Shown: in pieces, positions 2,451 to 45,219 of the stretch
How the letters are laid out: each line of letters begins with the position of its first letter
Position numbering within the stretch: position 1 is the stretch's first letter
NCBI RefSeq assembly: GCF_020745735.1
Contig: NC_083409.1
Location: 20,532,098 to 20,596,097, forward strand
Origin: Hemiscyllium ocellatum
Lineage: Eukaryota
Reading direction: 5' to 3'
Length of the DNA: 64,000 nucleotides
Translations under genes and position numbers: made by a program
Notes under the pieces: generated by a model
Databases searched by the model: none
Seen by the model: the letters and a program-made list of their open reading frames with translations, nothing else
Told to the model about the DNA's origin: nothing

Positions 2451-3284
2451 ATTGCTAGAGGACAGCGCCATGTACCCCGGCAGTACATTCCGACCTCCCC
2501 CACTTCCCCATTCTGTATATGGAAGGCGGAAGCCTGCCAGCAGGATATTCAACCGCAGGAGCTGTCACAGCCCGTGCGTAATTCTGTCCCACATTAAATC
2601 CACACAAATCTTGAATTCACATAACACCTTCAATATCCAAACATTCCAAGAATGTTCACAAAGTTGCAGTAAGAGGGATGGGGGAGGGGTTGGAGGAACA
2701 TAAGAACTAGGAGCAGGAGCAAGCAATTCAGCCCCTCGAGCCCGCACCACTATTTAATACAATCATGGCTGATCCAATCTCAGACTCAACTCGACTTTCC
2801 TGCCCACTCTCCATCATCCTTTAACCCATTACCCATTAAATATCTGTTCATCTCCTCCTTGGTGTGAGACAGGGAAGGGACCACTCCATTTCAGAAAAGA
2901 CTGACCATGGAAGGGGAAGGAGAGGGGAAAGGATTGGAACATGTTGTGAATGGACAGAATGGGTCAGTGGGTCAGAGCCTGTCCTGTCCCTCCAACTCAC
3001 GCTGATGATCTGAGGATCTCCTCTCTCTGCTAGGCCTTCACGGAATGAGGTTTGTGTCCAAATCAGTCCCCAGTGAGAATAGGCCAACAGCACAGAACAG
3101 CACAGAACTGCCCTTCATTTGACCAGAGTCTGTCCATCTTCCTGAGAGAGGCCAAACCCTGGTCAATGTGGAAATAGGGTCTTACTCCAGGAGAAGACAG
3201 GGGTCAAGGGTTAACATCCATTAGTGGGACAGAGCAGTGGGAGATTTATCCTGCATTCACTGTCACCACCGAGGACACTGTCAG

Positions 3285-3346
3285 AAAGAGAGAGCAGTGA
3301 GGCAGAGAGAGAGATGGAGGGAAAAATTGCGTGTGCGTGTGTGCGC

Positions 3347-3380
<34 letters not shown>

Positions 3381-3995
3381 AAGAAAGAAAGAAAGAATGA
3401 GAGAGAGAGATAGAGGGACGAGCATCTGATACGGTGTAAGATATGTGAGCGGACCAAGAGAGAGGTAGAAGGAGGTAAAAATGGTGAGGTTGAGGGATAG
3501 AGAGAGAAACAAGATGTGAGACAGTGTGACTGAGAGGGATGGAGAGAGACAAAAAGACAAGGAGAGAGAGAAAAAGAGACATGATGGGTGTGAGACTAAG
3601 CATGTAGAGAGTTGAGAGGGAGGGGAGGGTTGAGTGTGAGAGAGAAAGAGAGATGAGTATGGGTAGATTTATAATGACAGAGAGAGGGAGAGAGACTGCA
3701 AATTGGGATTGAGAGAGGGAAGGAGAGAGAAAGAGGGAGGAATAGAGAGTGACAGATAACAATTGGAGGCTTTTAATTGAAATGAGAGAGGGAGCGAGTA
3801 ACAGAGACAGTGAGAGATGGAGAAACAGATGATAAGATGGAGTAAGAAAGCATCAGTGAGTTGGAGAGAGTGGCTATGAGACAGAGTGTATGTGTGTGAG
3901 AGAGGGAGAGAACATGAAAGAGATTAACAGTGGGAGAGAGAGATAGAGGTAGAGAGAAAGAAATGGTAGATGTGAGTCAGAGAGAGAGAGAGGGA
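3285..3995. repeat. GA-rich low-complexity tract with (GT)n(GA)n(GAAA)n microsatellite at about 3330-3412
   Basis: Directly visible purine-rich repeats. They explain the spurious S/L-rich ORFs 3211-3762 and 3246-3560. Confidence 0.95.
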
Positions 3996-4487
3996 CAAGT
4001 CCTGGTCACTACACTCTGGGAAGAATGTGATTGTACCTGAGAGGGTACAGGGGAGATTTCCCAGGATGCTGCCTGAATGTGAGCTTTGGGCACACCTCCT
4101 CCCTGCCCAGCCCTGTTAGAATTTTATATGTTTCAATCAGATCCCCTCTCATCGTTCTGAACACGAGTGAGTCCATGGCCAGGCGAGTTGGAGAGTGAGA
4201 GGAGAGTTGAGAAGAAATGTTTTCACCTAAAGGGTGTTGGGAGTCTGGAACTCACTGCCTTAAAGGCTGGTTGAGTCACAAACTCTTGTGACATTGGAGC
4301 AGTGTTTAGATATTCCCTTGTGTTGCTGTAACCCCCAGGGTAATGGGCCAAGAGCTGGAGGATGGGATTAGTGTCATCAGATCTTTGTTTACCAGCACAG
4401 ACACAATGGACCAAATGGCCTCATTCAGTGCTGTTCACATCAATGACTCTGAGACAGAGAGAGTGACAGAGAGAGAGAGAGAGAGAA

Positions 4488-4584
4488 GAGGAAGTGTGAG
4501 GGGCTGACGTGGCTCTCTCTGCCTGATGCCATTTACATACTGAGGAACACCCAGTCAGACTCTCACAGGCTGCAGCTTTATAAA
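4488..4584 (+). promoter_or_regulatory. Ig light-chain V promoter
   Basis: GAGGAAGT PU.1/Ets box 4488-4495, TGACGTG CRE-like 4505-4511, octamer variant ATTTACAT 4531-4538, GAGGAA 4542-4547 and TATAAA 4579-4584, about 60 nt upstream of the leader ATG. Confidence 0.75.
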
Positions 4585-4644
4585 GCAGAGCCCAGTGAAG
4601 GGAGAGTTTATCAGGAACCAGGCACAGGGTCAGGAGCACACACC

Positions 4645-4693
4645 ATGATTTCACACATCCAGCTGATCTGGCCCCTGGCATTCTGTGTCGCAG
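4645..4693 (+). CDS. Ig kappa-type (NS4-like) light chain, leader exon MISHIQLIWPLAFCVA(G)
   Basis: caccATG context, hydrophobic signal peptide, 49 nt ending at a phase-1 donor gcag|gtataa. Confidence 0.92.
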
Positions 4694-4879
4694 GTATAAA
4701 TCTCTCTCCTTCCACCTTGAATCTTTCACTGTTCTCCATTTCACTCCAATTCCACTGACTTGTGATTGAAGGGAAAATGCTGAAACCAGAGGAATGCTCA
4801 GTGTCTCCAACAATCTCTCATTTGACAGGCTCTTTCTGTGACAGTTCTGACTTCACTGTTTTTCTCTCTGACCCCTCAA

Positions 4880-5212
4880 GTATCAGTGGGGACATCACCA
4901 TGACCCAGTCTCCCCCGGTGATGTCAGTGGGACGGGGCCAGACCGCAACCATCACCTGTACGGCCAGTCAAAGCATTAGCAGCAACCTTGCTTGGTACCA
5001 GCAGCGAGAAGGTCAGAAACCTTCTCTCCTGATCTATGGTGCAGCAACTCGATTCACAGGAGTCTCGGAGCGATTCACCGGCAGTGGATCAGGGATCAGT
5101 TACACCCTGAAAATCAGCAACGTTCAGAATGAGGATGTGGCTGACTATTACTGTCAGCAGTATTACAGCTGGCCTTTTTTTATGTTCGGTAAAGGAACCA
5201 AGCTCAGACTGA
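4880..5212 (+). CDS. Pre-joined, in-frame V-J exon of an Ig kappa-type light chain
   Basis: (G)[110 protein letters not shown]. Both V Cys, the FR2 Trp, DYYC and the J FGxG motif are intact, and there is no RSS between V and J. Donor ctga|gtaagt at 5213. The upstream acceptor reads caa| (4877-4879). Confidence 0.96.
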
Positions 5213-5586
5213 GTAAGTAAACCTCAATCCTCTGTTATTAACCCTGTCAATACTGAAACACACTTTCTAAAATAAAGTTGCTGATTTGTTGAAGGTGTTA
5301 GTGGGGAGCTGCAGTGAATGAAATGGTTGATTGAGGAGCACTGTGTCTAACAGGGTGTCCAGCTGCATTTCATTACTTTCATGCCCTCTTTAAAAAAAGC
5401 AAGATATAAGTCAGTCAGTTTTACTCACTGTGTGGAGGAGCTCTGTCCATTTGCAGCCTGTAGTCCCATTCCTGCAGCATGGAGTGAAATCAGTGAGTAG
5501 CCTCCTGCCAGTCTCAGTGTGACGGACACGGGCAAAGTTTGATGTGAGCTCTGGCTCCCTGTCCCAGTCTCTGATCTCACTGACCT

Positions 5587-5609
5587 CAGCAGCAGCAGCA
5601 GCAGCAGCA
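5587..5609. repeat. (CAG)n microsatellite in the J-C intron
   Basis: cagcagcagcagcagcagcagca is directly visible. Confidence 0.95.
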
Positions 5610-6061
5610 CAGTGAGACACCGAGCTCCCACCTCCCCCAGCTTTAACTCTGCTCAATCACACAATCACAGAATTGTTACAGTGCACAAGGAAGCCATTCC
5701 GTCCATCCTTTCTGGACTAGCTCTCCGAATGAGCAATTCACTGAGTGTCATTCTCCTGCCTTCTCCCTGTCACCCTGCACATTGTTCCTTTTCAGATAAC
5801 AGTCTCATTCCCTTCGGAATATTTTAATTGAAGCTGCCTCCACCACACTCTCAGGCAGTGCACTCCACACCTAAACCACCCACTGGCTGAAAATGTTTTC
5901 CCTCATCTCACTTTTGTTACTTTTCCAATTACTTTCAATCTGTGGTCACTCGGTCTCAATCCTTTCACAAGTGGAATCATTTTCTCCCTATTTACTCTGT
6001 TCCAGGCCCCTCCTGATTTTGAGTTTCTGGAACAATTCTCCTCGCTGCCTTCTCCTAAGAA

Positions 6062-6261
6062 TTGAAGGTGCCGGTGTTGGACTGGGGTGGACAAAGTTAA
6101 AAATCACACAACACCAGGTTATAGTCCAACAGGGGGTTTATTTGGAAGCACTAGCTTTCGGAGCGCCCCTCCTTCATCAAATGGTTGTCAGCGGCGCTCC
6201 AAAAGCTAGTGCTTCCACATTAACCTGTTGGACTATAACCTGATGTTGTGTGATCTGTAAC
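6062..6261. mobile_element. Short Penelope-derived hairpin insertion (family B)
   Basis: cacacaacaccaggttatagtccaacagg...ggaagcactagctttcggagcgcc is mirrored by ggcgctccaaaagctagtgcttcc...cctgttggactataacctgatgttgtgtg. A second copy lies at 40690-40941. Confidence 0.7.
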
Positions 6262-6269
6262 TTTCTCCA

Positions 6270-8100
6270 AAGACGACAGTCCCAAATTCTCCAATGTATC
6301 TTCATAACTGATATTCCTCATCCCTGGAATGATCTTTGTGCATATGTTTGCCAGCTCTACAAAACATTCACCTCCTTCCTGCATTATTCACCTTATTTAT
6401 GTCCCTCATGATTTTATAAACCTCTATAAGGTCACTCCTCAGCCTCCAGTACTTCAGGGTAAAAGGTCTCAGCTTTTCCAGCCTCTAATGGTCACGGAGT
6501 CATACAGCGTGGAAACAGATCTTTCAGTCTAACTTCTCCATGCTAGCTCGATATCCAAAACTGACTTCAGCCCATTTGCCAGCATTTAGCCCACATCCCT
6601 CTAAACCCTTCCTAATCATGTACCCATCCAAACATCTTTTAAATGCTATAATGGTATCCGTCTCCAGCACTTTCTCTGACAGCTCGATCCGTACACGCAC
6701 CACCCTCTGTGTGACAAGTTACCCCTCAGGTCCCTTTTGGATCTTTTGCCTCTCATCTTAAACCTATACCCTCTATTATGGATTCCCTTTCCCAAGGCAA
6801 AGACCTGCGATGTACACCCTGTCCATGGCCGTCATGATTTTATAAACATCTATAAGGCCATCCCTCAGTCTCCGATCCTGCAGGAAAAATAACCCGTCTA
6901 TTGACCCTCTTCCGACAGCTCAAACCCTCCAGTTCCAGGCAACATCCATGTAAATCTTTTCTGCTGAATTTTAAGTTTAACAGCATCCTTCCTATCACAG
7001 GATGATCAGAAATGTTCACATTATTCCCAAAGTAGCCTCACCAATTTCCTGTACAGCTGCAAATGAGGTCCCAACTCTGACACTTAGTGCAGTGACCAAT
7101 AAAGGCAAGTGTACCCAACACCTTCTTCATCTCCCTGTCTCCCTGTGACTCCACTGTCAAGGAATAATGCCCCTGCACCTGCACCTGCCCCTGCCCCTGC
7201 ACCTGCCCCTGCACCTGCCACTGCACCCTGAGGTCACTTTGTTGAGCAACACCCCACAGGGCCCCACCATTAACAGTACAAGTCCTGCCCTGGTTTGACT
7301 TTCCAAAATGCAACATCTCACATTTATCTAAATTGAACTCCATTTGTCACACGTTTAGATCAGAGTGGTGCTGGAAAAGCACAGCAGGTCAGGCAACGTC
7401 CGAGGAGCAGGAAAATCGACGTTTCGGGCAAAAGTCCTTCATCAGGATTCCTCTAGCCGAAACATCAATTTTTCTGCTCCTCGGATGCTGCCTGACATGC
7501 TGTGCTTTTCCAGCACCACTCTGATCTAAACTCTGGTTTCCAGCATCTGCAGTCTGCACTTTTGTCCATTTGCCACACCTCTGCCCATTTCCCCAAATGA
7601 TCAAGGTCCCACTGTACTCTCAGATAAGCTTCTTCACTATCCACTGTACCACCAATTTTGGTGTCATTTACAAACTCGCTATGATTCCTATATTCACATC
7701 CAAATCATTTATTTAAATGATGAAAAGCCATGGACCCAGCACCAATCCTTGTGGCACACAGCTGACATCTGATCTCCAGTCTGAAAAGCAACCCCTTACC
7801 ACCACTCTCTGTCTCCTATCTTGAAGCCATTTTTTTACCCAAATGGCTAGCTCCCCCTGGATCCCATGTGGCCTAACCTTCCTAATCAGTCTTTCATGTG
7901 GAACCTTGTCAAATGCTGAAGTCTATATAGACAGTGTCTACTGTTCTGCCTACCCCAATCTTCTCTTCAAACAACCTCAATCACGTTAGTGAGACATGAT
8001 TACCATGCACAAAACTGCATTGATTGTCCAAATGCATGTAAATCCTGTTCCTCAGAATTCACTCCAATAACTTACCCAGCAATGACATCAATCCCACTGG
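6270..8100 (-). mobile_element. Nested CR1 LINE ORF2 (RT, 3' part) fragments
   Basis: Minus-strand MEFNLDKCEMLHFGKSN...LAFIG is a typical CR1 RT C-terminal motif. Interrupted by a (CCTGCA/C)n expansion at about 7168-7228 and by the hairpin at 7353-7564. Confidence 0.8.
7353..7564. mobile_element. Penelope-derived hairpin insertion (family A) carrying a minimal type I hammerhead motif on the minus strand (7414-7450)
   Basis: Inverted arms 7354-~7428 and ~7456-7530. TSD tccatttg(t/c)cacac at 7339-7352 and 7565-7578. Minus strand reads AATC-CTGATGA-A-GGAC-TTTT-GCCC-GAAA-CGTC-GATT. Confidence 0.75.
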
Positions 8101-8399
8101 TTTATAGTTCCCTGGCTTTTCCTTAAACAATGGCTAACATTAGCCAACCTCTCTGGTTCTCCAGAACCTTACTCGTGGCTGTCAATCAGAAACATACCTC
8201 AGCAAGGGGTCCAGCAATCTCTTTCCTAGCTTTCCACAATGTCCTGGGATACACCTGGAGATTTATCTACCGTCTTGCACTTTAAGAAATCCTCTTCTGT
8301 AATGTCTTTCTCCATGATAAATACTGACCTGGAATTTTAATTTAAGACCTAAACCATTTCCTGTGGACCCACCCAGAGGTACATTGTTCACCTTCATGG

Positions 8400-9960
8400 G
8401 GCCCTATTCTCTCTCTCGTTACTCTTTTGCCCTTTTCTTATTCACTATAATTCTACCACTTTTGCCCTTGAGTAAGTTCAGAAATTGTTTGCCTTCCTTC
8501 AAATGTATCTCGACTATACCTGGTGCACATCCTCTACTATTCTTTTCAGGTCTTTCCTGCCAACCTTTGATCCCACTTTATTCAGATCCGTTACATCCAT
8601 ATCCTATAGAAGCTGGCATTTTCCCCAGTGAAGATGTTTGACCCTGAAAAGGCCTTTGTTCTTTTCTACCATCACCCTCAACTTTGTGATACAATGATCA
8701 CTCTTCCTTAAGTGTCCTCTCACTGACACTTGATCCACTTGGGACTTCTCATTCGCAAGATCCAGATCTAGCAGAGCCTCCTTTCTCATTGGACTGGAAA
8801 CATGCGGCTGGAGAAAATTCACATGGACACACTCTCATGACCCTGGCCCCTCTCTGTCCTTCACACTGCTACTACCCCAGTCTATATTCAGAAATTAAAG
8901 ATATTTCCACCCCCCCCCCATTTATAATGACTATTACATTTGCAGGTCTCTGTAAATTCCTTGCAAATGTATTCCTCTAAATCCTTCCCACTGGGTGGTG
9001 ACTTATTGACTGCACTGATGATTCTGTAGATCTTGGTGCTCCTCTCTGGTATTACCTCCTGACTCCCACAGCCCTGCCAAGTTAGTTTAAACCCTCTCCA
9101 ACAGCACGAGTAGATCACCTCAAAGGAGCTCAGTGCCAGCTCTGTTCAGGAGCAACGCTGTCTGGTCTATCCAGGTCCCATCTCCCCCAGACCCAGTCCC
9201 AATGTCACAAGAATCGAAAACCCTCCCTCCTGGATCCTCTTTCCAGCCCCACAGTCACTTGTGTTATCCTCCTGCTAATCTTGTCACTTGCCTGTGGCAC
9301 TGGGAGTAATCTGAAGATTCCTACTTTTGAGTTCCTGATGTTAATTCCCTTCTGAGCTCCCTAAATTCTGACTGCAGGACTACATCCCTTTTCTCCCTCT
9401 GTCACTGGGACCGATGTGGACCACGATTGATGCCTGTTCCCCCTCTCCCCTCAGGGTGCTCTGCAGTCACTCAGTGACATCCTTCACCCTGGCACCAGGG
9501 AGACAACACACCATCCTGGATTCTCATCTGCAGCTGCAGAAATACCTATCGATGCCCTCACTCTCGAATCTCCTTTCACGATCAGTCTTCCAGTCTTCCT
9601 TATACCCCCCCCTCCCCCCAATACAGCTGAGCCACCAGTGGTGCCATGGGTTTGGCTCTGGATGCACTCCCCAGATGAACCATCATTCTCATCAGGATTC
9701 CAAACTGAATCCTGGTTGGAGAGTGGGATACACTCAGGGGATTCCTGTACTAGCTGCCTGGTCCTTTTGGACTGGCTGCTGCTCCCCCATTCCCTCTCTC
9801 CCTGCATACTCTGAAGCTGCAGAGTGACCACATCTAGAAATGTGCTCTCCACGGAGCTCTCAGCCTCACGGATGCTCCGCACTGACACCAGCTGCTGCTC
9901 AAGCTCCGAAATCTGGAGCTCCAACTGCTGTCACTGACCACACTTCCTGCACTCATGGTA
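8400..9960 (-). mobile_element. CR1 LINE ORF1 (esterase-type) and start of ORF2, decayed
   Basis: ORF 9484-9924 (LQISELEQQLVSVRSIREAE...LIVKGDSRVR...VSLVPG) resembles a CR1 ORF1 coiled coil followed by a GDS esterase motif. Endonuclease remnant LLDLDLANE...SDHCI at 8604-8822. Confidence 0.7.
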
Positions 9961-10129
9961 TTCCAGGAACTGGGAAGCATTCTGAAATTCCCACATGGAT
10001 ACATACTCTCTCCACTCTTTGGTTGTCTCTGGGCAAAGTTCTAATGACAAACAGCTCCAGCAGGGCTCACAGTCCAGTGGGTTCAGTGTTCCAGGGTTTT
10101 GGGGAAACTCTCCAGAAGTCTTTAAGAAA

Positions 10130-13100
10130 TAGGAGCAGAAATCAGCCAATCAGCCCATGGAATCTGCTCTGCCATTTGATCTTGGCAGATATGCTTCTCA
10201 CCCCATTCTCCTGCCTACTCCACAGGAACGTTCGATCCCCTTAGCAATCACAAACCTATCTATCTCTGTCTTAAATACACTCAGTGACCTGGCCTCCAGC
10301 CCACTGTAGCAATGAGTTCCACAGATTCCCCACTCTCTGGCTGAAGAAAGTCCTCCTCATCTCAGCTCGAAAGGTTGGCCCTTCATACTGAGGCTGCACC
10401 TTGGTTACCGAGTCTCTCCTGTTTTTGGAAACATCTTGTCTGCATCCACTCTACGCATGTCTATCAGTATTCTGTAAATTTCAATAAGGTCCCTCATCCT
10501 TCTAAACTCCAGTAAGTACAGACCCAGAGTCCTCAACCGTGCCTCATATGACAAGCCTTTCATCCCCAGGATCATTCTTGTAAATCCCTCCAATGCCAGC
10601 ATGTTGTTTCTTAGAATATGGGTCCCAAATCTGCTCACAATATTCCAAATGCAGTCTGACCAGAGCCTTACACAGCCTCAGCAGTACATCTCTGCTCTTG
10701 TATTCTGGCCCTATTGAAATGAATGCGAACATTTTATTTGCTTCCCAAGCACAAACTGGACCTGCCTGTTAATCTGAAGGGAAACCTGAATGAGGTTTGT
10801 GCTTTAGATTTCCAAAGACTTTCCTCATTTAGAAAACAGTCTTTGCATCTGTTCTTCCTCCCAAAGTGCATACCCTCACACTGTCACACATTGTATTCTA
10901 TCTGCCACTTCTTTGCCCACTCTCCGAGCCTATCCAGGAGCTTTTAAAGCCTTCCCACCTCCTCAACACTACCTGTCCCTCCACCTATCTCATGTCACCT
11001 GCAAACTTAGCAACAATGTCTTCACTTCCTTCATCCAGATTGTTAATGTATAACGTGAATAGTTATGGTCCTAACATTGACACCTGCAGAACTCTACTCG
11101 TCACCAGCGGCCATTGTTCCTCATGCTCTGCTTTATGCCAACCTGCCAGTCCTCAGTCCATGCCAGTACATTGCCCCTAACACTGTGGGTGCTTATCTTA
11201 TGTCAAATGCCTTCTGGAAATCCAAAAAGATTACTTCCTCAGACTCTCTTTTGTCTGATTGGTTCATTGCCTCCTCAAAGAATTCTAACAGATTTGCCAG
11301 GCATGACGTCTCCTTGATGAAGCCATTGCACTTCCAAGTCCTCTGCAATTTCATCCTTAAATTGAAGTCTAAAACCTTACCAACAACTGAGTCCTGGCTA
11401 ACTGGCCGATAATGTCCCATCTTCTACCTCCCTCCATTCTTAAACAGGGGTGGTATGTGAGCCATTTTCCTGTCCCTTGCCCCTACCAAATCCGTCCCCA
11501 CCCCACCTCCACATCCTGACTCCATTGATTCCTGAAAGATCATCTCCAATACCTCCACAATCTCCTCAGTGATCTCCTTCAGAACACACTGGTGTAGTTC
11601 ATCCAGTCTGGGTGAGTTATCCACATTCAGACCTTCCAGCTTCCCCAGTACCGCCTCCTTAGTGATGGCCACTACACTTCCCTCCAACCCCTGACAGTCT
11701 TGAATTACTGGTACACTGCTGGTGTTTTCCATGGTGCAGACTGATGCAAAGTATCTATTCAATTCCTCTGCTATTCCTAATTTTCCTGTTATTCTTTCTC
11801 CAGCCTCACTTTCCAGTGATCCATAGTCTATTTTTGACTCCCTCTTCCTTTTTATACACCTGATAAAACTCCTGCAATCTTCTTTTATATGACTGGCTAG
11901 ATAGCTTCCACATTTCACCTTCTCCACCTTTAATGCTTTTTCAGTTATCCCCTGCAGGTTTTTAAAGGCTTCCTAATCCTCTGGCTTACCACTACTCTCC
12001 ACCACATTGTGTGCTTTTTCTTTTGCTTTTATGCTGTCCTTGACCTCCCCCATCAGCAATGGTTGCCTTGTCCTCCCCTTGGTATGTTTCTTCTTTTTTG
12101 GGATGAGTTCCTGCTCTGCTTCCTGAATTACCCCCAGAAACTCTGCTGTTTGCTGCCCCATCATCTTACCTGCTCGGCTCCCCTTCCAACCAACTCTGGC
12201 CAGCTCCTTCCTCATGTCTTTGGAGTTACCTTTACTCAACTGAAATACTGTTCAATCTGATTGCAGCTTCTCCCTCTCAAACTACAGGGGGAATTCGATC
12301 ATATTATGGTCATTTATCCACAGGGATACTTTCATCTTAAACTCACTCATCATGTTTGCCTCAATACACATCACTGAATCCAGACCTGCCTGTTCCATCA
12401 TGGCTCAACCACAAGCTGCTCCAAAATCCATCTCGTCGACATTCTATGAAATCTTTCCTTGAAATACACTACCCAGTCCACCTATCCATTGAAGTCTGCC
12501 CTGACATTTTCTGTCTCCTGACTGATTTCCTTCCCCACACCCTGATTACTGCTTGGAGACCTGGACATAACTTGCATCAGATTCTTTATTTATTGCAGTT
12601 CCTCAGCTCTACCCACACAGATTCTACACCTTCTAACTCTACATCACTTCTTGCTATTGATTTAATTTCATTTCTCACTAACAAGGCAACTCTTCCACCT
12701 CTGCCCATCTGCCCGTCCTTTTGATGGGACATGTATCCGTGGATATTTAGTTCCCAGCCTGGATCCCCTTACAGCCATGTCTCTGTGATACCCACAACAT
12801 CGTACCTGCCAGTTTCAATCTGCACTACAAGCTCATTGTGTATATTGTGTGCATTAAAGTACAACACCCTCAGCCCTGCATTGACTGCCCTCCTTCCCAT
12901 CATTGTCCCCTTATTTGCTGTGCTTTACGTTCGATTCCTGATCCTTTCTGTACTCTCTGTCCTTTTACATCTTCTAGAAACTTGAATAACCTTTCCTGAG
13001 CCCTCCTCCACTTAACTAGTTTAAATTCCTTGGAAACTCAATTTACCTCAATGTGTGGCATCACTTTTACTCCCTTACTCGGAATGCTTTGTACATTTAG

Positions 13101-13260
13101 ATACAACCTCTTTAAGTTTGTACTATTATTGATTTTCCATGCACTTTCAGGGTTCCTTTGATGTTCAAAACTTCCATCCCTTTCTTTTATTTTCTGGTAA
13201 CAATCAATCCCATCACTAACCGGCAATCCTACCTTCTCCTTTACCTTCCATTTTCTCATT
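10130..13260 (-). mobile_element. CR1 LINE ORF2 fragments (EN/RT) with 3' tail
   Basis: KETSCLANLLEFFEE...VIFLDFQKAFD (11193-11420), LVRLHLEYCEQIWDPY, LKRLYLNVQSIPSK (EN N-terminus, about 13080-13120). Many stops and frameshifts. Confidence 0.85.
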
Positions 13261-13494
13261 TTCCATCCAACTGAACCAAATTACTTTCTCTTTGGGTTGA
13301 GTTCAGGACACTATTTATCATTGAGCCAACATCATTATTACTGTTTGATCTCATTGCTTCTAGTGGGATCTTGCTGTGCAGAAACTGGCTGCCACGTTAC
13401 TGACATTGCAACAGTGACTGCTTGTCAAACAAAACTGTCTGTAAATGTCTTTGGGCGAGCCTGAAGTGTTAAGGGCTGGATTGAAATACAATTA

Positions 13495-14110
13495 GAGTCA
13501 GAGGGATGGACAGCACAGAAACAGACCCTTCGGTCCAACTCGTCCATGCTGACCAGATATCCGAAATTAATCTAGTCCCATTTGCCAGCATTTGGCCCAT
13601 ATCCCTCTAAACTCTTCCTATTAATATACCCATACCTTTTAAATGTTGTAATTGTACCAGCCTTCACCACCTCCTCTGGCAGCTCATTCCATACATTTAA
13701 CACTCTCTGAATGAAAACGTTGTCCCTTAGGTCCTTTTTAAATCTTTCCCCTGTCACCTTCAGCCTATGCCCTCCGGTTCTGGACTCCCCCACTCTGGAG
13801 AAAAGATCTTCTCTATTCACCCTATCTATGCCGCTCATGATTTTATAAACGTCTATACGGTCACCCATCAACCTGCAATGATCCAGGGAAAACAGCCTCA
13901 GCCTATTCAGCCTCTCCCTTTCGCGCAAACCCTCCAACCTTGGCAACATCATTGTAAATCTTTTCTGAACCATTTAAAGATTCACAACATTTTTCCTCCA
14001 GCAGGGAGACCAGAATTGCACACAGTATTCCAAAAGTGCCCTAACCAATGTCCTGTACAGCCGCAACAGCTCCCATCTCCAATAATCAATGCACTGACCA
14101 ATAAAGGAAA
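13495..14110 (-). mobile_element. CR1 LINE 3' end
   Basis: LVRALLEYCVQFWSP..., VQKRFTMMLPRLEGL...YKIMSGIDRVNRE...GYGPNAGKWD on the minus strand. Confidence 0.85.
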
Positions 14111-15259
14111 GCAAAGCAAATGACTTTGTCACTTCCCTACCTACCTGCAACTTCATCTTCAAGGAACTAATCTTCATTTTTTGGATGAACTGAGAGTCTT
14201 TCAGTTGTGAAAGATGCCATTCCATGGCACTATTGGATGAAGAGCAGGCAGTTCCCCCTGGTGTCCCTGGTCAATATTTATCCCCCAGTCAAAATCACTA
14301 AAAATCTATTTCTCTGCTAATTATCACATGGGGTTTGGGATCTTGCTGTGCACAGTCTGCTAGAAAGATCCATTGGGACATCCTGAGCTGGGAGCAGGTG
14401 CTACACAAATGCAAGTCTTTCTTTAAGGGTTGGAGTCTCCTGATCCGGATCCTCATCCATTTTCTGCGCACTCTCACCTTCCGGGGTCATGAGGTCATTA
14501 GGAGCAGTGACCCTGACCCTAGGACACTGAGACTCTTTGCAGCCTCACCCTTGACCTCAGCCCAATAGTGTGCAGAAAGGTTTGAAATATAATCTAGAAC
14601 CTTCTACACAGACACCCCAATGTGACTATTTCCTGACGTGTGTGGATCCGAGTCTGCTCCAATGTTCTCGGACAAAGTTCTCCTGATCTGTGGGTGATCG
14701 GAGGTTTGTTAAAGAGAGATCGAGCTCCATCCTACTTTCTAGCTCTTGCTCCATAGCTCTGGAGGTTTCGCTGTTTCAAGTGAATACCTAAGTGTTTTTT
14801 CAATGTGATGAGTGTTTCTGACTCTCCCACTCTTTCAGACAGTGAGTCCCACATCCCACCAGCCTCTGGGTGAAAACAAATACCCTCAACTCCCCTCTAA
14901 TCCTTCCCCCAACTGATTTCAATCTCTCCCCAGGGTTATTGCCCTCTGTGCTGGTGGAAATCAGTCCTTCCTACACACTCTGTCCAGGCCCCTCCTTATT
15001 TACACACCACCATCAAATCTTCCCTCAGCCTCCTGCGATCCAAAGAAAACATTCCCAGCCAATCCAATCATTCCTCAAAGCTCAAAGTCCCCATTCCAGA
15101 TAAACTCTTCCTCTGTCCTGGTCTCCTGTGGGATCACATCCTTCCTGTAATGTGGTGACCAGAACCATACACTGTTCCCTCACTGTGCTCTAACTGGGGT
15201 TTTACACAGTTCCAGAATAAACAAACTCCTTGCTTTCACAGTCAACCAAAAATGAGATA

Positions 15260-15590
15260 AGGGAGGTGATGGTCTAATGGTGTTATTGCTGAGCTGTTAA
15301 TCCAGAGATCCAGATAATGTTCTGGGGACCAGGGTTAGAATCCAGCAGATGGTGGCATTCAAATTCAATCAAAACAAAATCTGCAATTTAGAGTATAATG
15401 ATGACCATGAAACCATCGTTGATTGTTCGGAAAAGATGCCATCTGATTCCCTAATGTCCTTTAGGGAAGGAAACTGCCATCCTTACCGTGTGACCCCAGA
15501 CCCACAGCAATGTGGGTGACTCTAAACTGTCCTCTGGGTGATTAGGGATGGGCAATAAATGCTGCTGATCCAGCAATGCCCTCATTCCAT
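15260..15590 (+). mobile_element. tRNA-derived shark SINE (second family)
   Basis: gggaggtgatggtctaatgg head and body tcctttagggaaggaaactgccatcctt...gggatgggcaataaatgctg. A near-identical copy lies at about 58090-58390. Confidence 0.65.
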
Positions 15591-16730
15591 CAAGGGAAAA
15601 AGAAAAACAGTTTCTCCCATGTGTCTTCTTAACCACCTCACTGACCTGCATTAATCACCATGGCCACATCTTCCACCTCCACACACGTCTGACTTCCAGC
15701 TTCAAACCGACGAGAGACATTCCTTCATTATCTGAGAAACAGATCGAAAAATCAAACACAGGAGCAGCAGTAGGCCATTCGGCCCTTCAGACCTGCTCCA
15801 CCATTCAATATGCTCATGGCTGATCATCCAACACAGTCCCCTGTTATGCTTTCTCCCCACATTCTTTGATCCCTTTAATCCTAAGAACTATATCTAATTC
15901 CTTCTTTAATACACATTGCATCTAATTCCCTTTTGCTGGAAAAATGGATGACAATTATTGAGTTGTTGTCTGTTGACCAGTATGGACGCAATTTGCTGAT
16001 GAGCCTTTTCGGTCTCTATGAATCTTTGACCCTATTAATATATATTATGAATAACTGGGTACCAAGGACTGATCCCTGTGACACCCTAAGTTGTAATTAC
16101 CTGCCATTCAGAAAAAGACTCCTTCTTTCTGTGCTGTTGGCCAACCAGTACCCAATCCATGTCAGGACATGGTCCCAATCCTCTTGTTCATTTGGTCTAG
16201 ATCTGGAAGTCCCACCTTTACTCTTTGTAGGAACAGATTCTGAATGATCTCTGACTCGTCCTTCGAGGGCTCCCACTGCCCTGACACTGATTTCCCATCA
16301 TGTCACTGCTTCCAGTCCACTTTTACCAAAGCACCACACAGTTTAGTTAAATGAAAACTTTTACACTTACTGCACTTCCATCCATAGTCTCAATCTCACT
16401 GAGTTTTGAGCACCGTCGCTGAAATGCTCCCCCAGTGATAACCCTTCCAGTTGCTCACAGTCATTCCATAAACAATGGTCTAAAACTGTCCCTTCTCTCT
16501 CTGCTGCTTCACCATCACCTTCTCAGGAGCAATTAGGGATGGGCAATAAATGCTGGCCCTGCCAGTGACCCTCACATTCCCAAGAAGCAATTTGAGCAAT
16601 GCCTGTTCATTTGTCAGGTTTATTCTGTATTGACCAAAAATGTTCAAAAAGATTGTAATGCCAGTGAATATTGTGAAGGTTGAATTCCCTTTGAATGACA
16701 GGGATTAAAATTGCTCCTCTTATCTTTCAG

Positions 16731-17058
16731 GCCGTGAGAACTCTCAGCCCAAGCTGACCCTGCTGCCTCCCTCCCTGGAGCAGGTCAATACCAAGGGCAT
16801 GCCACCCTGGTGTGTCTTGCCAATCACTTCTATCCCGATGAGCTGGAGGTGCAGTGGAAGAAGGATGGTGCAGTCATTTCGGACGGGGTTCAGACCAGCA
16901 ACTACCTGCGAGCTTCGGACAGCACCTACAGTGTCAACAGCCTGCTGACCCTCTCCGGGTCTGACTGGGAGTCCAATGCTCGCTTCTCCTGTGCCCTCAC
17001 CCACGTGACCCTCCCCTCTCCCCTCAGCAAGCGCATCAGGAGATCAGAATGTGTGTAG
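16731..17058 (+). pseudogene. Ig kappa-type light-chain constant exon with a 1-nt frameshift
   Basis: Acceptor tatctttcag|gc is phase-compatible with the J donor. (S)RENSQPKLTLLPPSLEQVNTKG is followed by ggc-at-gcc (16796-16803), which shifts frame before ATLVCLANHFYPDELEVQWKKDG...YSVNSLLTLSGSDWESNARFSCALTH...SECV*. C1-set Cys/Trp motifs are intact. Confidence 0.93.
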
Positions 17059-17587
17059 AGTGTTCGCGACAGTCCACAGAGGAGACACAACTTTAAATAG
17101 GACAGGGCTGAGCTGGCAGGACAAAGGTCATAGTCAGCACTGAATTTCAACTCTCTTCCTTCTCAGGACTGCTCAGAGAACCTTCTGAGGTTTGCATGTT
17201 AAAGCAGGTCATTGTGACAGTGTCGAGGGAGCTTTACGCGATGTCAAACGTCATGCTGTACCTTGTCCTGGGAGTGTTTGATGGGGACATGGTTGACTTG
17301 TGATGCCAAGTAAAATCTCTTGAAGTTGCTGAAGACTGTCAGCTGTAAAAAACAATGTGGACCTCAGAATTCTCTGCTTCAGTAAACCAGATCTCCTTCC
17401 TGCTTAGCTGTCAGTTCCAATTTAAGGTTTGGTCACTGTTTAAAGGGACAGGATTATCATGTTATTGAGAAAATCTCCACAAGTGTTTTTCTCAAGCTCC
17501 AATGTGTCTATGAATTTGAGCAGCTTCCTCTGTCTGGGCTGTTAATTGCAGTTGTTTTTTTTCTGTCAATGTAAATCTGGAAAAGGG

Positions 17588-17593
17588 AATAAA
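17588..17593 (+). terminator. Polyadenylation signal of the light-chain gene
   Basis: AATAAA about 530 nt after the stop codon. It is conserved in the inverted copy (TTTATT at 28283-28288). Confidence 0.75.
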
Positions 17594-17964
17594 GGTGAAG
17601 ATTCAGTCTCTGTCTCTGTGCGCTTTGGAAATAGATGACCTCCCCCCCACCTCAGTTGATTGGCTGCATTTCAGCAGGTCATTGTCAAGATTGGCTGGTT
17701 GGCCTGTCAATCAATTACAATCAGCAATCGTTAATCATTTTCAAATGATCCCTTTGATCAGGGATTTGTGTAGGTTACAAGATTTCAAAAAGAACAGAAA
17801 CTGAAAGCTGTTAGGACTCAATAAGTACAATCTGATGCATTCCCTCTTCACTTTGTTGGTCCAGGCCCAGCTGATGGGATCGTACTGTGCAACCTCTGCT
17901 ACATGTTGGGTAGCTGCTGAAACAATCTTCTGCCATTCACCAACATTGTCGACCTTATGTGTCT

Positions 17965-28239: not shown

Positions 28240-29033
28240 ATTTCCAAAGCACACACGAGACAGAGACTGAATCTTCTTCATCTTTATTCCCTTTTCCAGA
28301 TTGACATTGACAGAAAACAGACTGTAATTAACAGCCCAGACAGAGGAAGCTGCTCAAATTCACAGCCACATTGGAGCTTGAGGAAAACACTTGTGGAGAT
28401 TTTCTCTATAACCTGAGAATTCTGTCCCTTTAAACAGTGACTAAACCTTAAATTGGAACTGGTGGCTGAGCAGGAAGGAGATCTGGTTTACTGAAGCAGA
28501 GACTTCTGAGGTTCACATTGTTTTTATACAGCTCACAGTTTTCAATCTTTGAAAGGTTATGCTTGTTATTACAACTCAACACTGTCCCCAACAAACAGTC
28601 TCTTGGACAGGGACAGAATAGGGTCAGATACAGAGTAAAGCTCTTTCCGTACTGTTTGCACCAACGACACCCAGGACAGGAACAGGATAAGAAACAGAAT
28701 AAAGCTGTCTCCAGACTGTCCTCTTCAAACACTCCCAGGACAGGGACAGCACTGGTTGGGTACAGAGTGAAGCTCTCTCTACAGTGTCAAAGTAACCTGC
28801 CTTAACCCCTGAACCTCAGAGTCTCCCAGAGGCCAGTCTCAAGAAGGAAGAGAGTTGAAATTCAGTGCTGACAATGACCTTTGTCCTGCCAGCTCAGCCC
28901 TGTTCTATTTAAAGTTGTCTCTCCTCTGTGGACTGTCTCCAACACTCTACACACATTCTGATCTCCTGATGCTCTTGCTGCGGGGAGAGGAGAGGGTCAC
29001 GTGGGTGAGGGCACAGGAGAATGAGCGTTGGAC
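28240..29033 (-). pseudogene. Inverted remnant of a second kappa-type C exon (3' ~87 nt) plus complete 3'UTR
   Basis: The reverse complement aligns to 16971-17632. It encodes ...LTHVTLSSPRSKSIRRSECV* (stop at 28947-28949), has a conserved 3'UTR and polyA signal, and carries its own 1-nt deletion (gctcgcttc to gctcattc). Confidence 0.92.
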
Positions 29034-33480: not shown

Positions 33481-36400
33481 ATGGGGTTTAAAATTGCCAG
33501 CATCAACGTGCGTAGCGTCAAATCGGCTACGCGATGCGGTTCAACGATGGCCTTCCTGGCCAGTGTCAAAGCCAATGTCCTGTTTCTGCAGGAGTGTGGG
33601 ATACCGCACCTCAGCAGCTACAGGAGGTGGTCGAGCATGTGGGCCCATGGGCCGTCAGTTTGGTCGGGGGGCAACGATAACCGCTCCTCATGCCTAGGGA
33701 TCCTGTTGCGGGGAGGCAACTTCACCATCTCCGAGGTTAAGGAGGTTGTGGGTGGGCATCTCCTCGTCACGGATGTTAAATACAGAAACGCTCCCGTAAG
33801 ACTAATCAACATGTATGCCCCAGCAGGTAAGAGTGAACAGTTGGCCGTCCTGCAGCAGCTTCCACTGTTACTGACTACGTCCAGGCCGGTCATTCTGGCC
33901 GGAGACTTCAACTGTATCGTTGATGCAGATGGATGATCCAGCGGGGGGGTCAGTAAACTGGACGCCACGTCCAGAGCCCTGATGGACACGGTAAAAGATG
34001 AAAAGCTGCACAACGTCTTCAGCACCCCTGCAGAGGGAGCGCAGCGTAGATACACCTGGTCATGGACAGACGGGTCTATCCGTTCAAGGATAGATTACCT
34101 GTTTGTGTCCCGAACGTTCTCGGTCAGAACCACCGACGTCAAGCCGGTGTTCTTCTCTGACCACTGCCTCCTGCTGGCTGACTGTCACCTACAGGACGAG
34201 CAGCGGGCGGGTAAGGGAACATGGAAGCTGAACACAAAGCTGTTGACCCTGGGAAACATTGAGGAGCTGAAGAGGGACTATGCAGGTTGGAGAACCGCGA
34301 AGCCCCTCTTTGAGTCTCCAGCAGACTGGTGGGAAACAGTAAAAGGGAACATCAAGAGGTTCTTCATCCTCAAAGGTGTTCAGGAGATGAGAGAGATGCG
34401 GGGGAAACTGTCCCAGCTCCAGGAAAGTATGCAGAACCTGTTCTTTCTGCAGATAATGGGGGTGGATGTCACGGAGGACCTCAAGGAGGTGAAGGGCCAG
34501 CAAGCCTCGGTCTTTGCTTCGGAGGCTTCCAAGATAATCTTCCGGTCCAGGGTCCGCTCGGTGGAGCAGGACGAGACGTGCTCACGTTTCTTCTTCCAGA
34601 AGGTGCACAAAGACAGCTCTGTGCTCAGCAGCCTGAAGGAAGAAGACGGCTCGGTAACATCATCACAGTCTGACATCATGAGGATCAGCAAATCCTTCTA
34701 TGCCAGCCTGTATGATGCGAAGCCAACCGACAGTGTGGCCTCCCAGTCGTTCCTGTCCTCTATCACGGAGGTCCTAGATGACGGAACATGAGAGAGGCTG
34801 GACCAGCTGCTATCTCTGGATGAGCTGACCAGGGCCCTCGAGTCCTTCAAAAAGAATAAAACTCCTGGAAGCGACGGCTTACCAGTCGAGATCTATTCCG
34901 CCCTTTGGGACTTGATTGGCTGGCACCTGCTGGATGTGTATGTCAGTATGCTTCGGGCAGGTACCATGAGTGAATCCATGAGGAAAGGCATCATCACACT
35001 CATCTACAAGCAGAAGGGGGAGAGGGACGAAATTAGAAATTGGAGACCGATCTCACTGTTAAAAACAGACTACAAAATCTTGTCAAAGGTCATCGCCAAC
35101 CGAGTCAGGTCTGTTCTGGGAGCGGAGATCCACACTGACCAAACCTGTGCTGTACTGGGCAGGAAGATCTCTGAGAGTCTTGCACTCCTCAGGGATACGA
35201 TCGCCTACGTGCAGGACAGGGGGTGGACACCTGCCTCATCAGCCTGGACCAGGAGAAAGCTTTTGACAGGATATCGCGTACATATATGACGGATGTCCTC
35301 TCCAAAATGGGCTTTGGGAGGGAATCGGAAATTGGATCAGACTGCTCTACACCAACATTGTCAGTGCAGTCTCAATCAATGGGTTGGAATCAAATAGCTT
35401 CCCAGTTAGATCTGGAGTCAGGCAGGGCTGCCCACTCTCTCCTGCCTTGTTTGTGTGTTGCATAGAGCCATTTTCCAAATCCATCAGGAAGGATGCGAGC
35501 CTGAGAGGGGTGACTATTCCTGGCAGTGGGGGCCTACAGGTTAAGGCCTCCCTGTACATGGATGACGGCGCCGTTTTCTGCTCGGATCCGCTGTCCGTGC
35601 ACAGACTCCTGTGCATCTGTGACCAGTTCGAACAGGCCTCGGGGGCCAAGGTAAACCGAGGCAAGAGCGAGGCCATGCTCTTCGGGAACTGGACTGACCA
35701 ATCCTATATCCCCTTCACCATCAGGACTGACCACCTGAAGGTGCTGGGTATTTGGTTCGGGGGGCTGGGGCGTGCGCCAAGACCTGGGATGAGTGGACCA
35801 GGAAGATGAGACAGAAAATAGGCAGATGGGAGCAATGGTCGCTCTCCATCGCGGGAAAAAACCTGGTCATCAGGTGTGAGGTACTCTCAGTATTGTTATA
35901 TGTGGCACAGGTCTGGCCTATCCCCAGAACCTGTGCTGCCACAGTCCCCCGGGCCATCTTCCACTTCATGTGGAGATCAAAGATGGACCGGGTCCGAAGA
36001 GACACTATGTACAAAGACCGGTGCAATGGGGGAAAAAACACTCCCAATGCCACCCTCACCCTGATGGCCACCTTTGTGTGTGGCTGTATCAAGCTGTGCG
36101 TGGATCCCCAGTATGCAAACACCAAGTGTCACTACGTACTGAGGTTCTACCTGTCCCCGGTGTTGCGAAGGATGGGCCTGGCCTCGCTGCCGCGGAATGC
36201 TCCGAGTAGTTGAACCGTTCCATACCACCTGTCCATCGTGGAGAAAGTTTTGAAGAAAAACACCTTTGACCACAAGTCCATCAGGAAGTGGTCAGCACGT
36301 AGCGTCCTTGAGATCCTTCGGGAAAAGGAGAGGGTGGATCCTGTTGAGTGGTTCCCTGAGCAGACTGTCAAAGCCATTTGGCAGAATGCCTCATTGCCAG

Positions 36401-45031: not shown

Positions 45032-45219
45032 NNNNNNNNNNNNNNNNNNNNNNNNNNNNNNNNNNNNNNNNNNNNNNNNNNNNNNNNNNNNNNNNNNNNN
45101 NNNNNNNNNNNNNNNNNNNNNNNNNNNNNNNNNNNNNNNNNNNNNNNNNNNNNNNNNNNNNNNNNNNNNNNNNNNNNNNNNNNNNNNNNNNNNNNNNNNN
45201 NNNNNNNNNNNNNNNNNNN
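45032..45219. other. Assembly gap (188 N) next to a (GT)n tract
   Basis: Run of N, with GT-rich microsatellite at 45220-45305. Confidence 1.

Follow-up and report, generated by a model that had tools for sequence, protein, structure and literature searches.

In the nurse shark, six germline-joined NS4 genes, two of them pseudogenes, were described by Lee, Fitch, Flajnik and Hsu in 2000 (R4, R7, R18 and RE18, with R6 and R19 as the pseudogenes; PMC2193156). In that study, the leader intron of NS4 was given as 186 bp and the spacer between V and J as about 500 bp, and the joined genes were traced to no fewer than five independent joining events. Germline joining of a few kappa genes in the nurse shark is also stated in the review literature (PMC5192425). 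Germline-joined shark immunoglobulin genes are standing evidence for RAG action in germ cells, which reshapes antigen-receptor loci, and each well-resolved joint is a data point on joining frequency and on end processing. Germline-joined kappa genes, dead ones included, were already described by Lee et al. in 2000; the gene described here adds a further example and leaves current understanding unchanged.

The bamboo shark Chiloscyllium punctatum provides the genomic material for comparison. Seven genomic kappa V regions of this species were used: five split clusters that include a J (L001, L002, L003, L006 and L007), one contig with a V only (L008) and one joined gene (L009, positions 3001-7428 of BEZZ01000502.1). 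L009 has a leader, a leader intron, a fused V-J (CMQDYSVPQTLSFGKG), a GTAAGT donor and a C exon on one strand and no RSS, and in all of this it is like the gene described below. Unlike that gene, it has a canonical acceptor (CAG followed by GT) and an in-frame C exon, and it is apparently intact.

The window, i.e. the whole stretch of 64,000 nucleotides that was analysed, contains a light-chain cluster that homology assigns to the cartilaginous-fish kappa class (type III / NS4-type). We consider it quite likely that this cluster was joined in the germline and has since turned into a pseudogene, where germline residence is judged from the assembly context and from the precedents above. The sequence-only reading had proposed a kappa-type gene of the nurse-shark NS4 kind with V and J already joined, and homology, collinearity and the footprint of an RSS-to-RSS deletion all agree with this part of it. 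The features of the cluster are collected in the table; they lie on one strand, in the order promoter, split leader, 186-nt intron, V, J, 11.5-kb intron and C.

Features of the joined kappa cluster, in window coordinates
Feature	Position	Strand	Remark
Octamer-like promoter element ATTTACAT	4531-4538	+	Same sequence in bamboo-shark clusters L001 and L003
TATA-like box TATAAA	4579-4584	+	Shared with L001 and L003
Leader exon of 49 nt (MISHIQLIWPLAFCVA plus 1 nt), beginning with the ATG at 4645; GT donor at 4694	4645-4693	+	
Leader intron, 186 nt, terminal bases AA in place of AG	4694-4879	+	Base 4879 is A; G in the relatives
Fused V-J exon, open and in frame	4880-5212	+	Leader end at 4880-4890, V-J from 4891
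V-J junction, 13 bases including a 7-T run at 5175-5181	5171-5183	+	Split relatives have 456-516 bp with both RSS here
J-C intron, 11,518 nt, starting with GTAAGT (5213-5218)	5213-16730	+	Repeats and reverse-transcriptase fragments inside
Kappa C exon, preceded by a TTTCAG acceptor	16731-17058	+	Stop of the original frame at 17056-17058

The best protein matches are kappa V regions or full kappa chains of bamboo, epaulette, basking and horn shark, at 77-85% identity, and a nurse-shark light-chain cDNA product (P0077) lies in the same range. The best database matches among the shark proteins carry the name 'immunoglobulin kappa light chain-like'; these and P0077 are 80-85% identical to the window sequence. 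The C domain, although frameshifted, is by eye about 95% identical to the kappa C of bamboo and epaulette shark. Its C terminus (...RRSECV) and an ELEVQWKKDG motif agree with chains of the bamboo shark and of the epaulette shark (Hemiscyllium ocellatum), unlike those of the nurse shark, and because of these two matches the source can be taken as an orectolobiform-like shark. Two unusual motifs of the V-J region, GRG and LKIS, could at first sight be signs of decay; as they are common to Hemiscyllium chains too, they are better regarded as lineage traits.

The V-J region itself is well preserved. Its open frame at 4891-5212, as found in the list of open reading frames, starts with DITMTQ, passes through CDR3 into J and closes one base into a codon, so that the uninterrupted in-frame V-CDR3-J followed by a GTAAGT donor, as described from the letters alone, was confirmed. 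The frame matches the Pfam V-set family (E=4.9e-16). In an alignment of 16 sequences, all the invariant V residues and almost all the near-invariant ones are present. The C exon, 11.5 kb downstream of V-J, matches the Pfam C1-set family (E=1.2e-19). Promoter, leader exon, J donor and C acceptor are all canonical, and the leader exon is nucleotide-identical to those of L001, L002 and L003. No second V was found within the 64-kb window, and no second complete C exon either; the only other C sequence in it is an inverted 3' fragment.

The layout at the V-J border becomes clear when compared to the split bamboo-shark clusters. In these, V ends in ...CCT(T/C)G(A/G), and after it come CACAGTG, 12 nt of spacer and ACAAAAACC. 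On the other side, GGTTTTTGT, a 23-nt spacer and CACTGTG precede the J start, which reads G(C/T/G)(T/A)(T/C)(A/C)CG TTCGG. The split clusters thus retain a V 12-RSS, the intervening spacer DNA and a J 23-RSS, whereas the window has the 13 bases of the junction instead. No heptamer or RSS-like site was found within 5100-5260, in agreement with the earlier statement that V and J are not separated by an RSS.

Outside this border the two kinds of cluster are collinear. L001, L003, L006 and L007 show 89-90% nucleotide identity to the window from the promoter through V and then from J into the intron. In the case of L001, window 4088-5170 corresponds to L001 1787-2862 (89% match) and window 5184-5444 to L001 3379-3638 (91% match); further downstream, 7799-9830 in the J-C intron is collinear with L001 7245-9285. 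What is absent from the window is L001 2863-3378, a stretch of 516 bp that contains the 12-RSS, spacer DNA and the 23-RSS (456 bp in the equivalent region of L003). To be precise, the missing L001 stretch consists of the last 2 bases of V, everything from the V heptamer through the J heptamer, and a few initial bases of J. With precursors taken from another species (C. punctatum), this missing interval reads as the footprint of a V(D)J-type deletion.

The proposed course of events would accordingly begin with a split kappa cluster, in which a V(D)J-type deletion would have fused V and J, the resulting joint then entering the germline; the joined cluster would later have been pseudogenized by two lesions. 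The nurse-shark NS4 joined genes are like the window gene in isotype, in cluster layout and in the 186-bp leader intron, and there too a V-J spacer of about 500 bp was removed with few bases lost or gained and some members are dead. Their CDR3 sequences differ from that of the window, and the species differs as well, judged from the C terminus (SECA in the cDNA product P0077, SECV in the window). The joined bamboo-shark gene has the CDR3 MQDYSVPQTLS, which is unrelated to the window CDR3, so the two joints are regarded as separate events. The V-J regions of these two genes are 70% identical, and the J-C intron measures 3.5 kb in L009 as opposed to 11.5 kb in the window. One further candidate for a joined gene, the one encoding P0010 (CHYESSLYT), was rejected: its DNA has a normal heptamer after V and it is therefore split.

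A V-J exon devoid of RSS could also be obtained by two other routes, namely a primordial exon that was never split, or conversion of a split gene by a reverse-transcribed rearranged transcript. Conversion by such a cDNA is at odds with the retention of both the leader intron and the J-C intron. As both introns are kept and the RSS-to-RSS interval alone is gone, the locus is likewise not a retrocopy, as had been concluded before from the introns; their collinearity with the split clusters adds to this. Regarding a primordial exon, the gene is nested in the kappa family and, with its flanks counted in, shares 85-90% nucleotide identity with split clusters. This makes a split ancestor far more parsimonious, and the same argument was made for NS4 (PMC2193156). 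We regard both routes as extremely unlikely.

Another possibility is that a somatic B-cell rearrangement, or a chimera of the assembly, underlies the join in place of a germline allele, as the junction in itself resembles any V-J joint of a lymphocyte. The joint of one clone would however make up a tiny share of the reads, and Southern blots failed to reveal somatic joints even in nurse-shark DNA from blood leukocytes (PMC2193156). Moreover, the flanks are seamlessly collinear with the relatives and the nearest gap lies 40 kb away. The cluster is also dead, with a CpG-to-TpG change in J, which does not fit a somatic joint. Altogether, such an origin appears very unlikely, and a deletion carried in the germline is the reading that we follow below.

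At the level of single bases, the junction can be divided into contributions of V and J by analogy with the relatives. On the V side, L006 and L007 (AGCTGGCCTTG(G/A)) serve as the model and supply ...TGGCCTT. On the J side, the model is given by L007, L003 and the Hemiscyllium J, the latter read from protein P0076, which supply (T)TTACGTTCGG. The run of seven T's had been suggested as a possible non-templated addition. The run is real, but four to five of its T's can come from V and J ends of the relative type (CCTTG(G/A) and G(C/T)T(T/C)ACG, respectively), and only TT or TTT are left over as bases with no template. These two or three T's may represent N addition. Aligning the junction to unrearranged V and J ends, which had been put forward as a way to define end processing, was possible with ends from C. 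punctatum, i.e. another species, and the numbers of bases trimmed and added can accordingly be given only approximately: about 2 nt would have been removed from V and about 1-2 nt from J. P nucleotides, for which the same alignment was meant, were rejected as the origin of the T's, as the palindromes of CCTTG(G/A) and G(C/T)T(T/C)ACG yield no T runs.

The nurse-shark joints show little sign of N addition, while the window possibly has its two or three untemplated T's. If these are truly non-templated, the window joint would contrast with the six joined genes of the nurse shark in this respect. We hold it rather unlikely that either of two stronger statements applies, namely that the T's are truly non-templated, through germ-cell joining with a TdT-like step, or that the two lesions described below are errors or confined to one allele and the gene yields a working light chain of fixed specificity. 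Next to the junction, the Met codon before FGKG is ATG in the window, and the corresponding codon is (A/C)CG in all five J's of the split clusters (ACG in four of them, CCG in one). From this we infer a CpG-to-TpG transition, a change typical of germline decay.

The first of the two lesions concerns the acceptor of the leader intron. In all seven bamboo-shark genes, the joined L009 included, the intron ends in CCTCAG and the exon continues with GTATCAG(T/C)GGGGAC; the window reads CCTCAAGTATCAGTGGGGAC, so that AG is changed to AA at 4878-4879. The earlier description of the leader and J-C introns as intact therefore holds insofar as both are present, but not for this acceptor. The leader exon closes in phase 1, the expected start of the next exon being 4880. 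Use of the next AGs, with exon starts at 4881 or 4887, shifts the frame and leads to a stop after 23 or 21 residues, respectively. Cryptic acceptors that keep the frame exist upstream, e.g. one with an exon start at 4829, which would place 17 extra residues behind the signal peptide. Rescue of leader splicing by a cryptic acceptor of this kind was considered and rejected: these sites lie upstream of the strong pyrimidine tract, and the C exon would still be unrepaired. In the window gene, leader, V-J and C are consequently not joined by canonical splice sites in one open frame.

The second lesion lies in the C exon. After TTTCAG, the exon starts with (S)RENSQPKLTLLPPSLEQVNTKG, the same as in functional chains. 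Between 16799 and 16800, 1 nt is deleted, which gives GGCA-TGCC in the window in comparison to GGCACTGCC. In its surroundings, the deletion site reads AAGGGCA-TGCCACC, where two cDNA-like contigs have AAGGGCACTGCCACC and the genomic L009 has AAGAGCGCTGCCACT. All the retrieved full-length shark kappa chains read KG(T/S)A(T)LVCL at this site. Followed from the C acceptor, the frame of the window gene contains 49 wrong residues and meets a stop 72 codons in, and the remaining part of the domain (ATLVCLANHFYPDELEVQWKKDG...SECV) lies in a different frame. The C domain is thus destroyed by the frameshift of this 1-nt deletion, and its intradomain and C-terminal cysteines are not found in frame within an intact domain.

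Taken as assembled, the gene can by its predicted exons make no light chain, because the leader-intron acceptor is ruined and the C exon is frameshifted. The proposal that it encodes a hard-wired specificity therefore does not stand. Since the gene shows only two lesions and is otherwise clean in its V-J frame, its promoter and the remainder of C, the inactivation is probably recent. The mode of inactivation differs among the known dead genes: in the nurse shark, R19 combines stop codons with an out-of-frame joint and R6 is disrupted at many places, while the window gene has an acceptor substitution and a C frameshift.

As either lesion could be an assembly error or a variant of one allele, we also weighed whether the gene might be functional, i.e. 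a germline-joined kappa gene with a fixed, hard-wired light chain, its lesions being assembly errors, allele-specific or bypassed. The open V-J frame with every invariant residue retained would fit this, and so would the intact promoter, leader exon and J donor. Such genes do exist, as the bamboo shark has its intact joined L009 and the nurse-shark genes R4 and R18 are expressed in neonates (PMC2193156), and the upstream in-frame cryptic acceptor at 4829 could bypass the first lesion. The frameshift in C, on the other hand, cannot be bypassed by alternative splicing, and the window offers no other complete C exon. Two independent disabling changes, both at positions that are invariant across the comparators, would have to be explained away. 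Neither of them lies in a homopolymer, the type usual in long-read errors, and the first is a substitution. We therefore judge a functional gene to be quite unlikely and retain the reading of a joined cluster that became a pseudogene.

What the window copy adds is a clean deletion footprint together with a clear fate: it was not kept and would have been inactivated by a frameshift and the loss of a splice site. This fate fits the view that most germline joints are evolutionary accidents and not selected innate-like receptors. An open V-J frame alone is no proof of a working gene.

Some further observations concern the related sequences. In the C. punctatum kappa models P0074 and P0078, the annotated start is an ATG within the leader intron (MLKPEECSV...). 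Both in the genes of these two models and in the window, the final ~130 bases of this intron can be read through in the V frame. The start inside the leader intron is likely an annotation artefact. Two short contigs from bacterial assemblies, L004 (Salmonella enterica, JAGUME010000068.1) and L005 (Aeromonas veronii, JAAQQN010000299.1), encode intronless shark kappa V-J-C, as does the protein P0063; these look like cDNA contamination of bacterial assemblies.

Concerning the rest of the window, the only run of N is at 45032-45219 (188 bases), far from the gene. An Rfam scan of the whole window (1-64000, including 7353-7564) gave zero matches at the gathering threshold, a cut-off that minimal hammerheads might fail to reach. 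Upstream of the promoter, at 4448-4480, there is a (GA)n tract, and (GA)n is found in the bamboo-shark clusters too. A (CAG)n microsatellite is located at 5587-5611, just inside the J-C intron. This intron is mostly repeat-derived and contains a weak reverse-transcriptase match at 11193-11420 on the minus strand. A stronger match to RVT_1 (E=2.7e-17) lies at 35267-35806 on the plus strand, within a G+C-rich block at 32-38 kb. The inverted fragment mentioned above is a partial kappa C copy at 28240-29033 on the minus strand, which comprises the final ~85 coding bases (FSCALTHVTLSSPRSKSIRRSECV) and 3' flank, with 85% identity to 16971-17632. Neither a V or J nor the 5' part of a C exon accompanies it in the window, and it is probably the remnant of a neighbouring cluster in tail-to-tail orientation, outside the joined gene.
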